Shown here: positions 19,873 through 25,854 of the stretch, in pieces
How positions within the stretch are numbered: position 1 is the first letter of the stretch
Layout of the letters: each line of letters begins with the position of its first letter
Assembly: GCA_904063045.1 (NCBI GenBank)
Contig: CAJFCJ010000020.1
Span: 1,418,916-1,482,915 of the forward strand
DNA: 64,000 nucleotides
Origin: Dimorphilus gyrociliatus
Lineage: Eukaryota; Animalia; Annelida
Reading direction: 5' to 3'
Made by a program: the position numbers and the translations under genes
The notes under the pieces: model-generated
Seen by the model: the letters and a program-made list of their open reading frames with translations, nothing else
The model's database searches: none
Told to the model about the DNA's origin: nothing

Positions 19873-20642
19873 ATGGACGCCGACGGATTGAAGTTGATCT
19901 TTCTCGCTTTAGTAGCAACGACTTTCTGTGGACTTGGTAAGATATCATACATTATTTATGTATTTAGTTGATTTAGATACAAATGCGATGTTTTATGGTC
20001 GAAAATGAGCTCACGTTAAAAAATAACTTTCCATTAAAATTGATTGCTTGAATGCAATCATGCATTACCCAGCGCCACAGATCGACACCATGCTTTCAAG
20101 CATGATCGATCAATTTACTACAAATTTTCGAGTATCTTAAGCTATTATTAATATTATTATGTATATATAAATACATATTCGATCTACAGTAAAAATTAAA
20201 AACTTGAAATATGCTATCTTTTACTCTTCAGTATCTTTTTACTGACCTTCAAAGTGTTTCATTTTCAGTTTCTGGAAACGATTTTTCCTGCTACGAATGT
20301 AATAGCAAATACAATAATAATTGTACTGATACCATTGACAAAGGAACACCTACCGTCTGCACGTCATCATCACATAATCATAATGGACAAAATTGGATGA
20401 ATAAACCATTTGAATTGTGCTTCAAGTCAGTACAGTCGTTTGCTGATCAAAGTATAGTTGTTAGGGGATGTGCAGCAAAAATTGATGGTTGGAAAGATGG
20501 ATGCATCGATCGTACAGGAACTCATGGAGTAAAAATTAAATATTGTTATTGTGAGGGTGATAAATGTAATACTGCAACTTCAGCATCGCCGTCTATTCTC
20601 TTTGTGATGTGCTTATTTGGTTTACTGTTCATGATGTTTTAG
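19873..20642 (+). CDS. GPI-anchored Ly6/uPAR three-finger protein (quiver/sleepless-like)
   Basis: Signal-peptide exon 19873-19936 (MDADGLKLIFLALVATTFCGL) is spliced to 20269-20642. CYECNS...CYCEGDKCN cysteine pattern, followed by a hydrophobic GPI-signal tail ATSASPSILFVMCLFGLLFMMF. Confidence 0.85.
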
Positions 20643-21281
20643 CGTAAAAAAATTCCGAATAGCGTAGTTGTTAAACTTTATAAGGCATGCTATATTAATT
20701 GAAAAAATCTTTATATCATATAATGCAAATCTTTTAGATCATTTAACTACCATTACTTCTTATTGTTGTAAATAATAACACTGTGTTTGTCACAATTTCT
20801 ACGTTAGCGTTCATCATACCTTTCCCATATAGTTTATTTCTGCTTATAGCTTCGAAAATTGTCGTTTTAACAAATCCTGTGACCCTTGTTTTATTAGAGT
20901 TATAAATCTTCATGATCATTATTATTGAAATACATCGTTTCACCCTTATAATTTTAAGATGTATTTATTGCTGTAAATGTATGAGTAGTTTGTCTTGTTT
21001 ACGTTAATGAGCATATTAACATATCCAGGGCTACTAATCAACACCTAGTTAAGCACCCGTGAAATATTTAGCACCAGTTTAGTATTTTCAGTGGACTATT
21101 TTACAACAAATAAAGATGTCATTAGAGTGTTTTAGTCTATTTATTTCTTTTTATTGTTAACTTGGTAGAAACATAAAGAAATTTTTAAATTTCAACAATA
21201 CCAATTACTCTAAAAAATAAGCAGTGTTATAACTGCAATAGTTTGGAAAAATTAGAAATTTCATCAATTATCACTCAGGTT

Positions 21282-24167
21282 ATGCCGAAGCGAAATTCTT
21301 CCAATCAGTCTGAATTTGATCGAAAAGCCTCAGGAAAGGCTTCAATTATTTCTTTCTTCCGACAACAACAATCCTCCCTACGAGTTAAAAGACGAAAAAA
21401 ACAAAAACCTATAAATGATATTGATTGCATTATTATCGACGATAGTGACGAAACAGGCGAATGCCCTACAGAAGATTCAAATTTATATAATACTAACGAA
21501 ACTTTAGACGGTAGCTCTAGAGATTCGACAGAAAGTTTTGATAAAGATACAAAAAAAGACACTGATAATGAAAATTTGTTCTTGCGTACCGAACACAATC
21601 AAACTGTAGCGGAAAAAGTTATAATAGAGGAAATTGATAACAATGATAGTCTGGGAGAATCGATTGTTCAAGAGAATGATGATAATCTAGAACATTCGAC
21701 TTCCAAAGATAACGAAGATAGCGTTGTGGAAAATGACTATAGTCCCTACTATCTCCAAAATTTCGTTCGTATAGTTCAGAGCGTTCAGAATGATAACATG
21801 TTTGATAACTTATTCGATGAACCAGATTTAAAGATTATAGAGAAATTTTTTGAATTGTCAGGTACATCTATGACTTTAAACATTTCAAGTACTAATTGTA
21901 TTTCAAATCTTGAACAGAACAATCTAAAAAGTTATACGCTCGATTGTTTTTGAGGCGTCGTAGGTGGATACCACTTCAAAAGATTAAGTACGCCAATATC
22001 TCTGACGATTTAACATCGTTTTTAAATGAATTAGTCAAGGTCAATTTATTATACAATGGTTTGTAAAATTATGCTTATTGACTTAATTTCAACGATTTGA
22101 ACACATTATTTGTTATTAGTCGATAGTTTATCGAATTTAGACGAAGGACTTCGGTGCTTGTTAAGTAGTCAAGTAAAATTGCTGGCAAAATCATTAAAAC
22201 TCAACTACAATGAAAGTAAAACGTCATTAAACAAGGCTATAATAAAACATGCCAAATCCTCTTCGATTTCTTCTTTCTTTACGTCTGGCAAGAGTAGTCG
22301 ATCTGACATGATTCTAAGACGGTAAACTTACTATTTAAAAATCTAAGAAGGATTCTATTAAAATTTCTTATTTACTGAAGAATAAAGGATCTTTTGGGTG
22401 ACTGTTACAAAATTAATGAAATATCGAGTGATGTTTTTATGAGATGCTTTATACTCTATGCTCCGCATTGGTCGAGCGGCGATGACGATTTGACCGGCCA
22501 ACAACTCATGTTTGTTTCTATTATATATGCCTATATGCCTTATTTCTTCAACTTACGAACAAAAAAAAAAACAGCTTCCAAATGTTAAGAAGCGATATCA
22601 ACAAGTCTTTATTTCCAAAGTTCGAAATTGTCAAGCGTAGTCGAATTTTTCACAACAGACAATGTTTAAAGCATTACCAAGCAGCTTTAGCTCATGAAAC
22701 AGATATCAAAGAATTGATTTCACAAAATGCATTCGAAGATGCTTATTCTCTTTTTTCTAAAGTTCTCGAAGAATGGAAGACCTTATTCCAAGAGGATAAA
22801 GAGATGATTAAGTAAAAACTGTTTAGTTAACAAATATATGTATAGTGTACTATCGATTAATGTATTAATTATAGACTAGACGAGAAATTACCGGTATTTT
22901 TAAGAGTATTCAGCGCCGGTACCATCTATACTAGAATAATGGTTATGGGAGTTGAAATATTACAACGTTTAAAACGGTATAAAGATGCGGTCAAACTAAT
23001 AACTAGTATTCTAGATCAAAGTACCTACGGATGGCACGTTAGAGGAGCTATGTACGAAAGATTAACATTAAATTTAGACCAGCATCTCAAACGTTATGAA
23101 GATGTAAGTTTTCTATTATCTTTTAGAAACCATCTCTCTTATTACTCTTTTGATTTTAGGCTTTAAATGCTTGTCAAGACGCGCTAAAGGATGATGGTGT
23201 GAGGGTTGGACGACGATTATCAATATGGCTGAGGGCAAAACGTATTTGCAATTCCAAATCGAAAAGTTTAAGAAAAAGGTGGACAGAATTTAGTGAAGAC
23301 AAACTGCGCCTTGTTAGTGATCCTAGAGAAATTACAATTACAGCAAGCAGAGTACAGAATGCTGGTGTAGGTTATAATTGGATTAGTCAGGAGGCATCCG
23401 ATTCAACTGATGAGAATCAGGTTACCTTTCTCAGGAGAGTTGAAGACGTTGCGCTAGAGCACTATAAAACTCAGAAATATTCGGAAGGCTTACACGGAGA
23501 GTCAGCTCCTTACAGATTTCTTTTCTCGCTATATTTTTGGGATATTTTATTTTCTCCTGTGCCCGACGTATTCCATTCTCCTCTACAGATCTTTCCTCTA
23601 GACATTTACTCACCATCTTTCTATGAAAGTAGAAAAGAGCTTATCGACAATAGAATAGAAGAAATAAAGTTCGCAGGAGAAGATGTAATTAATTTTCTAT
23701 TTTTACCGATTCAAATATTAAAATAACGGAAACAACATAATCCTATTTCAGAAGCTGCTAGAACTGCTAAAAGACTCTTGGAACGACCATGAAAATATGG
23801 AATGCATATATACTAATTGGGAACTGTTTAAAAATGTTGATCATTGCAGTAGCCTAGTCAAATGTATTGGAAGTGAGCATTTAAGCGCAATATTCCACCG
23901 AATAATAACAGACGTGAGGCGAACTTTAGGCGGCATGCCTGATTTAACTATTTGGTCTCCAGAGAGGAAAATTTGGAAACTAGTTGAAGTTAAAGGTCCA
24001 GGTGATAGACTTTCTACGAAGCAAATTCTATGGTTAGATTATTTTTCGACAGTTGGCATAGATGCTGAAGTATGCTATGTTCAAGGTAAAAAGCTAGCTT
24101 TTCAGAATGACATACTTGAAAATTTAATTTTTTTGCAGCCGTTACGTCGAAAAAATTGAAAAAGTGA
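21282..24167 (+). CDS. FAN1: Fanconi-associated nuclease 1 (VRR-NUC), multi-exon
   Basis: YYLQNF...EQSKKLYARLFLRRRRW; TPR region RGAMYERLTLNLDQHLK; GLHGESA; GGMPDLTIW...LVEVKGPGDRLSTKQILWL (PD-(D/E)xK). The last intron 24086-24138 gives CYVQAVTSKKLKK*, with stop TGA at 24165-24167. Confidence 0.92.
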
Positions 24168-24718
24168 TGAAAAGAAGCTCAATATTTTTTATACTTTTAT
24201 TTAAAATAATAAAATGTCAATTGAAAAATTGTACAAATTATTGTTATGGTAGATGCGTAAACTTCCATAGAATTTATCAATGCCTTCAATGTCCATTGAA
24301 GATGGACGGTATCAATTGTAATTTATCCTGTATGAGAAATCTCTCTATGGACTGTCGTAGAAAATGTAGACGAACTAATAATAAGAATATATGTAATTGC
24401 TTTATATTTTCATGCCCCATGTCAAAAAGACATTCCGTAATGGAAAGAGTAACCTTTAGCGGAAGTAGAACTGAAGAGGAAATGGAACATATGCAAAATC
24501 CATTGGTAAGGGAAGCTTGGTCGCTAAAATCTTCCAGATTTGTAACTATTGAAAAGCTAGCCTTTTTGATTATGATTCTCCTAGGAATAACAATTTTACT
24601 CTGCAGTTTTATCTGGTTATTACTAGGTGGAAGTAATAGGAAAGCCTGCGCCCATTGTGCTATTGCGTTAAATCATAAGAAAGATTTAAGAGTAGTTCGT
24701 CTAGACAATATCAGATAG
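24167..24718 (+). CDS. Intronless 183-aa type I membrane protein: signal peptide, Cys-rich EGF-like ectodomain, one TM helix, short tail
   Basis: Open frame MKRSSIFFILLFKIIKC (signal-like), CTNYCYGRCVNFHRIYQCLQCPLKMDGINC (six-Cys EGF-like) plus further Cys, then TM LAFLIMILLGITILLCSFIWLLLGG. This ordered architecture is unlikely by chance in AT-rich DNA. No named ortholog recognised. Confidence 0.7.
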   Translation: MKRSSIFFILLFKIIKCQLKNCTNYCYGRCVNFHRIYQCLQCPLKMDGINCNLSCMRNLSMDCRRKCRRTNNKNICNCFIFSCPMSKRHSVMERVTFSGSRTEEEMEHMQNPLVREAWSLKSSRFVTIEKLAFLIMILLGITILLCSFIWLLLGGSNRKACAHCAIALNHKKDLRVVRLDNIR

Positions 24719-25115
24719 GAAGGAAATAGAGAAGGAAATAAAAGAAAAACATAAAAGATTAAAAGTAAATGTTACATTTATTGTTTTTAAATATATTATG
24801 AGTTTTGTCAATAGTTTTCCTTTTATCTTCTCTTTGCTATTTTTGATTAATTAATTAGAAATCATAGAAAAAGTCGTTTTTTTTTCTTTAAAAAAAAATG
24901 ACCAACCTCTTAAAGGTGGGTCTGATTTTATCAAAGTTATAATAAGATTTTCTTTAAAAAGATTGATTTAATCTGTCAATGTTAACGCTGCATTATCGTA
25001 TAATCAACATACGATAAAGGTGAAGACTATGTCAATAAAGTACGCTGTTAGTACTGGTCTAATAAATTCTTTTGAACGCCATCTATAGTCTTTGGGCGAA
25101 ACATAACTTTGTTGT

Positions 25116-25854
25116 TCAATTGAAGATGAGATTTTTAAAACTTTTATTAAATATTCTAAACGACGGACTTATGTGACGTCGTTCAGTATCTTCTTGAATT
25201 CTTATATTCTTCAAATTAATTGACGCTTCGGCGACACTTTTGAAAACCTGGGCGACGCTTGAGTATTGATCGCAAGCTGATACTTCAAAAAAGGATGTGC
25301 AGGAATATTCTTTAGCTGTTCTCTCACCTGATTGTCTTGCAACATTTCTGTCAAATTCTAAGTCGGCTTTATTACCAACTAACGTTACCGGACATTGGGT
25401 ATGAGAAACAATATCTAAATAAGCTTGGGAGCTGGCTAAACTCTTCCTGTCAGTAATACTGTAAACAACAACGTAGGCGTCCGCCCAGTCAAGATATCTT
25501 TCTGAATTCGTACATTCCTCTTCGTCAAATGTATCCATAACCCTTATTGTTATTTCTTGATTATTAATAACTTCTTGCCTGTTATATGTTCCTTCGTGTT
25601 TCGGATCATATTCGGTAATAAAACGTTTCGAGAGATATTTAACGACGAGAGCTACAAGGAAAGAAACAAAATTTTTAAGTTATCCTCTTTTCTTTTCTAT
25701 AAACAAAGAAGATTGCCAAAAGGTCTTTAGTTCCAGGGAAGGAACCTTTCTATTTATGAGAATTTTTACCTGATTTACCAACCCCTACGGCTCCTAATAT
25801 AGCAACGTTGCAGGAAGGTTGATAGGAAGCGTCTTTGTGCTTCTTTTGGTTCAT
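25116..25854 (-). CDS. Ras-like small GTPase of the RERG/RERGL/RASL11-12 group, ~206 aa
   Basis: Exons 25854-25770 and 25651-25116. Motifs GAVGVGKSA (G1), FITEYDP (G2), VMDT (G3), VVVYSITD, LVGNKADL (G4), EVSA (G5); no CAAX box. Confidence 0.85.

Follow-up and report, generated by a model that had tools for sequence, protein, structure and literature searches.

A stop-start junction between FAN1 and a lineage-restricted membrane-protein gene in the annelid Dimorphilus gyrociliatus

Genes at the locus

The window analysed here is a stretch of 64,000 nucleotides (nt) from the annelid Dimorphilus gyrociliatus (assembly GCA_904063045.1, contig CAJFCJ010000020.1, positions 1,418,916 to 1,482,915 of the forward strand), in which the DNA-repair gene FAN1 is followed on the same strand, with a spacer of 0 nt, by an intronless open reading frame (ORF) of 183 codons. 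The stop codon TGA of FAN1 occupies 24165-24167 and its last A, as read from the sequence, is also the A of the ATG at 24167-24169 which opens the ORF. The complete junction is TGATGA (24165-24170, +), composed of the FAN1 stop, the start of the ORF and, at 24168-24170, a second TGA in frame with FAN1; a homologous ATGA is present in a related species (L002:5938-5941). An earlier sequence-only reading of the window had described a stop-start overlap after a 53-nt last intron with no intergenic DNA, and the direct reading of the junction confirms it. The assembly measures 77.9 Mb at a GC content of about 32%, its introns are very short, and both its size and the intron length agree with what has been published for D. 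gyrociliatus (PMC7854359).

The upstream gene matches the Pfam families VRR_NUC (2.2e-28) and FAN1_TPR (1.6e-14), and its best matches among PDB sequences are the human FAN1 structures (2.5e-22), with an alignment that reaches to about 10 residues from the chain end; these matches identify it as FAN1. Exons were searched separately and were joined only across the junction, to read the frame. Matches to Fan1_SAP and FAN1_HTH were weak and under their cut-offs. The penultimate exon (23752-24085, +), which carries the VRR-NUC nuclease domain according to Pfam, the PDB matches and the related species, ends in phase 1 and shows 85% protein identity to the related species, with a nonsynonymous divergence (dN) of 0.07 and a proportion of synonymous differences (pS) of 0.79. 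The last intron (24086-24138, +; 53 nt, GT..AG) is read directly from the sequence. The last coding exon (24139-24167, +), defined by its translation and by conservation, reads with the carried-over G as GCC GTT ACG TCG AAA AAA TTG AAA AAG TGA, that is AVTSKKLKK*, and would double as the leader of the downstream ORF.

The related species is one species represented by four independent Logan contigs (L002-L005), identical across the junction and all colinear, unspliced genomic DNA. At the same position in FAN1 it has an intron of about 112 nt which cannot be aligned with the 53-nt intron, and the spliced C-termini match (AVTSKKLKK* in D. gyrociliatus, AVTSKKLKKKL* in the related species). In a contig from a more distant animal (L006) the corresponding FAN1 segment, VCYVKAISGKK..., lies within a single exon and agrees with the spliced reading. 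The conserved C-terminus, the unalignable intron and the single-exon reading together indicate that the splice model is right.

At the other end of FAN1 the first exon (21282-21953) is long, acidic and of low complexity; the weak FAN1_HTH match is its only one, and no match to a UBZ-type zinc finger was seen in the Pfam scan of this exon. Just 5' of the FAN1 ATG lies a conserved block, ATCAATTATCACTCA, at 21255-21284 in D. gyrociliatus and L002:2838-2868 in the related species. In both species it contains a GT at positions -4/-3 of the ATG. The block may act as core promoter, as part of a leader or as a weak 5' splice donor.

The downstream gene and its product

The downstream ORF (24167-24718, +) closes with TAG at 24716-24718 and is predicted to encode a single-pass, cysteine-rich membrane protein restricted to this lineage. 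By our own arithmetic the chance of a 183-codon open frame at this AT content is about 5e-7. The related species encodes a homologue of 179 residues (P0001; 49% identity, E 1e-46), and the comparison gives a ratio of nonsynonymous to synonymous divergence (dN/dS) of 0.37 with dS around 1; the frame is intact although synonymous sites are saturated. In the contigs L002-L005 FAN1, the ORF and a convergent Ras-like gene follow one another in the same order, and the ORF is single-copy in the D. gyrociliatus genome. Since gene order is shared, identity remains at 49% despite saturated synonymous sites, dN/dS is 0.37 and the cysteines are conserved, these comparisons identify the ORF as a real gene under selection. 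It had been proposed as an intronless frame of 183 amino acids, which holds, and conservation and selection can now be added to that description.

The ectodomain (24230-24415, +) contains 12 cysteines (C22-C83), all 12 of them conserved, and two conserved N-glycosylation sequons at N21 and N58; 15 of 17 cysteine columns are shared. A transmembrane helix is predicted at 24557-24631 (+), where the best 19-residue hydropathy window, at residue 131, scores 2.91. Behind it a conserved basic tail that bears a KAC-x-HC motif runs to 24715, and positive charge is greater on the C-terminal side of the helix. Residues 1-17 (24167-24217, +) resemble a signal peptide by hydropathy and are absent from the product of the related species, the best 9-residue window at the N-terminus scoring 2.84 in D. 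gyrociliatus and 1.17 in the relative. A signal peptide assigned by hydropathy is to be taken with caution, since T-rich DNA gives hydrophobic residues in any frame. Type I topology, with a signal peptide, one helix and a positive C-terminal side, fits hydropathy and charge in D. gyrociliatus, while the hydrophobic N-terminus is missing in the related species. The charge distribution together with the conserved sequons suggests that the N-terminus faces outward in both. Some single-pass proteins insert with the N-terminus out in the absence of a signal peptide. Of the architecture suggested earlier, the cysteine-rich ectodomain and the transmembrane helix are thus conserved; the signal peptide is found by hydropathy in D. 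gyrociliatus only.

The protein had also been called an orphan and EGF-like, and the two labels fare differently. A two-sequence HMMER profile run against 1.84 billion representative proteins retrieved P0001 only, as did a word search, and at this sensitivity the protein is an orphan. Among the next-best FAN1 contigs obtained with the VRR-NUC exon, which come from more distant organisms (L006-L009), none has an ORF after FAN1. The EGF-like label is not upheld: the protein has no Pfam match at E 1 or E 10, EGF-family profiles included, and no match among PDB sequences, and AlphaFold models of the whole protein and of the ectodomain are unusable, with predicted local distance difference test (pLDDT) scores of 44 and 49. 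Neighbours in the ESM Atlas are all below the threshold of 0.9 (an unnamed mollusc family at 0.89, EGF-type proteins at 0.83-0.88) and are leads rather than evidence. As such a lead, small membrane-tethered EGF-type ligands are alike in size, in the N-terminal cysteine-rich ectodomain, in the single helix and in the short tail; the ORF product differs from them in having no match to an EGF hidden Markov model at E 10, no confident fold and a cysteine spacing other than the six-cysteine EGF pattern.

The junction in the related species

The two junctions, TGATGAAAA in D. gyrociliatus and TTATGAAAA in the related species, are homologous, so that the ATG overlapping the FAN1 stop predates the species split, most simply as an ancestral ATGA. 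Its use differs. In the related species the overlapping ATG opens the peptide MKICSIFLYFF followed by TAA, an ORF of 11 codons; the start of the conserved protein there is a further in-frame ATG, 63 nt downstream and 60 nt past the FAN1 stop, where D. gyrociliatus has ATA. The difference in start codon is seen in all four assemblies of the relative (L002:5938-6003, homologous to 24167-24208). As the orthologues start at different ATGs, a signal-peptide-like N-terminus is present in one and absent from the other.

Given that the conserved protein begins at a different ATG in each species, the exact overlap has not been kept as a coupling device. Judged by this comparison, the exact stop-start overlap is not what selection kept; common to both is the near absence of a spacer (0 and 60 nt). 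Conservation of the overlap had been named earlier as a check, and its outcome is divided: the ATG over the stop is present in the related species, as ATGA, and it does not serve there as the start of the conserved protein.

Signals around the junction

Reinitiation of the kind that depends on a TURBS (termination upstream ribosome-binding site) requires an upstream UGGGA, complementary to 18S rRNA, and local RNA structure (PMC10275272). No TGGGA is found in 23900-24170 or in L002 5601-5945 of the related species, and four segments folded around the junction were no more stable than their shuffles (z -1.27, +0.38, +0.07 and +0.16). In reinitiation of this kind the restart codon overlaps the stop or lies no more than about 20-30 nt from it; the arrangement is an overlap (TGATG) in D. 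gyrociliatus and a distance of 60 nt in the related species, where the overlap itself carries only the 11-codon ORF.

At the level of nucleotides the last FAN1 exon stands out for its conservation. After the acceptor, 25 of 26 nt are identical to the related species (96%), a level that just 7 of 1080 windows from other coding sequence reach. We take this as mild evidence of a second constraint, for instance that of a core promoter, leader or splicing enhancer. The sequence CCGTTACGTCG within this stretch is no recurrent motif of the genome, with 4 matches against 10 for the reversed control.

Relative to FAN1 the ORF lies in the -1 frame, and upstream of the ORF this frame runs on without a stop through 15 codons of the spliced mRNA (24072-24166). 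Fusion of FAN1 and the ORF by a frameshift is ruled out by the TAA which, in the related species, stands ahead of the conserved domain. An in-frame upstream ATG at 24072, which in the spliced mRNA would add 14 residues over the last FAN1 codons in the -1 frame, is CTG in the related species and is probably unused.

Candidate poly(A) signals are found at both genes, although such hexamers are expected by chance and are common in AT-rich DNA. For FAN1 the candidate is the AATAAA at 24208-24213 (+), 41 nt after the FAN1 stop and inside the second ORF, just where the sequence-only reading had noted it; in the related species an ATTAAA (L002:5986) lies 45 nt after the FAN1 stop. For the ORF the candidates are an AATAAA (24737) and an ATTAAA (24758), which span 24737-24763 (+), 19-40 nt after its stop. 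Beyond them the last exon of a Ras-family GTPase gene (25116-25538, -; Pfam Ras 1.7e-16) converges on the ORF. The stop codons of these two genes are about 400 nt apart, and their 3' untranslated regions (3'UTRs) must therefore be very short or overlapping.

Interpretation of the overlap

The explanation that we tentatively rank first, at somewhat less than an even chance, is that two separate transcription units have been squeezed into an overlap, with the start site of the ORF within the 3' end of FAN1 and with FAN1 transcripts whose ends lie at or beyond the 24208 hexamer. The ORF would be transcribed from its own start site in the last 60 nt or so of FAN1 (last intron or last exon, 24108-24166), FAN1 mRNAs would end at the AATAAA or beyond, so that the two transcripts overlap, and the membrane protein would be translated by ordinary scanning from a short leader. 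Upstream ATGs are found at 24030, 24062, 24072, 24077 and 24107, and 24108-24166 is the only stretch free of them; a longer leader would carry upstream ATGs, so that clean scanning to the start of the ORF is expected only if the mRNA begins within this stretch. In favour of two units we also count the poly(A) hexamer shortly 3' of each stop and, in the 26 nt that follow the acceptor, 96% identity despite saturated synonymous sites, as would suit an additional function in a core promoter or leader. Further support comes from the conserved and selected ORF in its shared gene order, from the different start ATG of the related species, from the lack of both UGGGA and RNA structure, and from published work on D. 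gyrociliatus, in which cap analysis of gene expression (CAGE), the assay for transposase-accessible chromatin (ATAC) and k-mer analyses of 5'UTRs describe canonical narrow TATA/DPE promoters and no spliced leaders; the absence of operons and of trans-splicing is an inference drawn by the authors from the missing spliced leaders (PMC7854359). On this account the overlap is best explained as a by-product of compaction and not as a conserved coupling device.

Several points weigh against two separate units. No recognisable TATA box or conserved promoter block is found in the last FAN1 intron, which is unalignable between the species, and the start site of the ORF is placed from the sequence. A leader of at most 60 nt with promoter elements in a coding exon would be unusual, and the conservation of the last exon may equally reflect splicing enhancers or the FAN1 C-terminus.

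A rather unlikely alternative is a dicistronic mRNA of FAN1 and the ORF which reads through the 24208 hexamer and ends after 24737, the ORF being reached by termination-reinitiation at the overlapping AUG or by an internal route. It would account for the zero spacer, which leaves a conventional promoter no room, for an ATG over the FAN1 stop ancestral to both species, and for the unusual nucleotide conservation of the last FAN1 exon. A review names stop-start pairs such as UAAUG and AUGA as the typical arrangement where reinitiation follows a long ORF (PMC10275272); TGATG and ATGA match that geometry, and human 3'UTR ORFs can be reached by reinitiation (PMC3923131). However, the overlapping AUG of the related species gives 11 codons only, and its conserved protein lies 60 nt past the stop, compared with a range of about 30 nt for viral reinitiation. 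Neither the UGGGA motif nor RNA structure is present, the FAN1 stop is followed at 41 nt by a canonical AATAAA, and the species is reported to have no operons (PMC7854359). The protein, moreover, is under purifying selection. Reinitiation after a very long ORF is inefficient, and this sits poorly with such selection. The narrower proposal that one mRNA undergoes TURBS-independent termination-reinitiation at the UGAUG, which would place the pair in a class of stop-start-coupled pairs, we regard as improbable.

The sequence-only reading had offered two possibilities, a bicistronic mRNA with coupled translation and a promoter inside FAN1. Coupling as the purpose of the overlap is weakened by the related species and by the lack of both UGGGA and structure, and a separate start site in the 3' end of FAN1 now ranks first.

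A shared FAN1 promoter with alternative splicing, as at the nematode unc-17/cha-1 locus, is slightly more improbable still. A weak donor before the FAN1 ATG (GT 21279-21280) would be joined to the acceptor at 24138, skipping the FAN1 coding region and giving a monocistronic mRNA for the ORF. The GT is present in both species within the conserved 5' block, the acceptor and the 26 nt after it are the best-conserved stretch of the region, and in D. gyrociliatus the stretch from the acceptor to the ORF is free of ATGs, the ORF start being the first AUG of such an mRNA. However, the donors are weak (GTTATG here, GTAATG in the related species) and the GT may be due to chance, the transcript is predicted from sequence alone, and in the related species the first AUG after the acceptor is that of the 11-codon ORF.

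That the ORF is an extension of FAN1 by a -1 frameshift, or an unexpressed and decaying gene, is very improbable: the 15 upstream codons over which the -1 frame is open after splicing, the A-runs of the last FAN1 exon and the loss of the signal-peptide stretch to a TAA in the related species would favour it, but that TAA would stop a frameshift product before the conserved domain, the A-run in D. gyrociliatus is out of phase for a canonical slippery heptamer, and decay is at odds with an intact frame of about 180 codons, a dN/dS of 0.37 and fully conserved ectodomain cysteines across saturated divergence.

Comparison with known gene pairs

Dicistronic or abutting gene pairs, such as stoned A/B and Adh/Adhr of Drosophila, occur in animals without trans-splicing. 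ORFs in human 3'UTRs which overlap the main ORF are a further case (Gould et al. 2014, PMC3923131). All of these are alike with the FAN1 pair in that two conserved ORFs run in the same direction, the first is long, the spacer is too short for a promoter and the second ORF lies in what would be the 3'UTR of the first. The FAN1 pair differs in that it is known from genomic sequence alone, in its poly(A) hexamer just after the first ORF and in the start codon of the related species, 63 nt downstream.

The viral TURBS systems, which include calicivirus VP2 and influenza B M1/BM2 (UAAUG), have the same stop-start geometry after a long ORF, here UGAUG and in the related species AUGA. In contrast to them, the FAN1 pair has no UGGGA and no upstream structure in either species, and consists of cellular genes and not of viral RNA. 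Translational coupling at ATGA and TGATG overlaps is described for bacteria and archaea (PMC6728339), with overlap sequences identical to those found here; the FAN1 pair belongs to the nuclear genome of an animal, which has introns and relies on cap-dependent scanning, with no mechanism of the Shine-Dalgarno type.

The spliced-leader operons of nematodes and tunicates resemble this locus in their tandem genes with little or no spacer and in the compact genome, and the AG acceptor 28 nt before the second start would fit them as well. D. gyrociliatus differs in being reported to have neither spliced leader nor operons (PMC7854359), and the AG in question belongs to the last FAN1 intron as its ordinary 3' splice site.

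Significance and neighbourhood

Abutting and dicistronic animal gene pairs are already known; new to this one are a membrane protein not described before, confined to the lineage, and the displacement of its start codon from one species to the other. The locus illustrates the extent to which intergenic DNA can shrink in an animal that keeps canonical promoters, and here a taxon-restricted membrane-protein gene would draw its leader, and probably its promoter as well, from the 3' coding end of a DNA-repair gene. Such an ORF is easily concealed in annotation within the 3'UTR of FAN1. The two species constitute a natural experiment, in that they share the junction, start at different codons and have a signal peptide predicted in one only, and the locus is a compact one in which to ask if cellular mRNAs reinitiate after a long ORF. 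Unless the two genes prove to share an mRNA, its importance is moderate, that of a further abutting pair in a compact genome. If the reinitiation reading were true, compact animal genomes could evolve prokaryote-like coupling of unrelated genes without trans-splicing, and would have done so in a genome published as free of operons.

Upstream of FAN1 the window carries another intronless ORF of 143 codons (20211-20642, +), with a hydrophobic N- and C-terminus and at least 10 cysteines. A word search gave no homologue for it. It looks like a glycosylphosphatidylinositol (GPI)-anchored protein of the Ly6/uPAR (QVR) type, and the neighbouring ORF of the related species matches PF17064 QVR.

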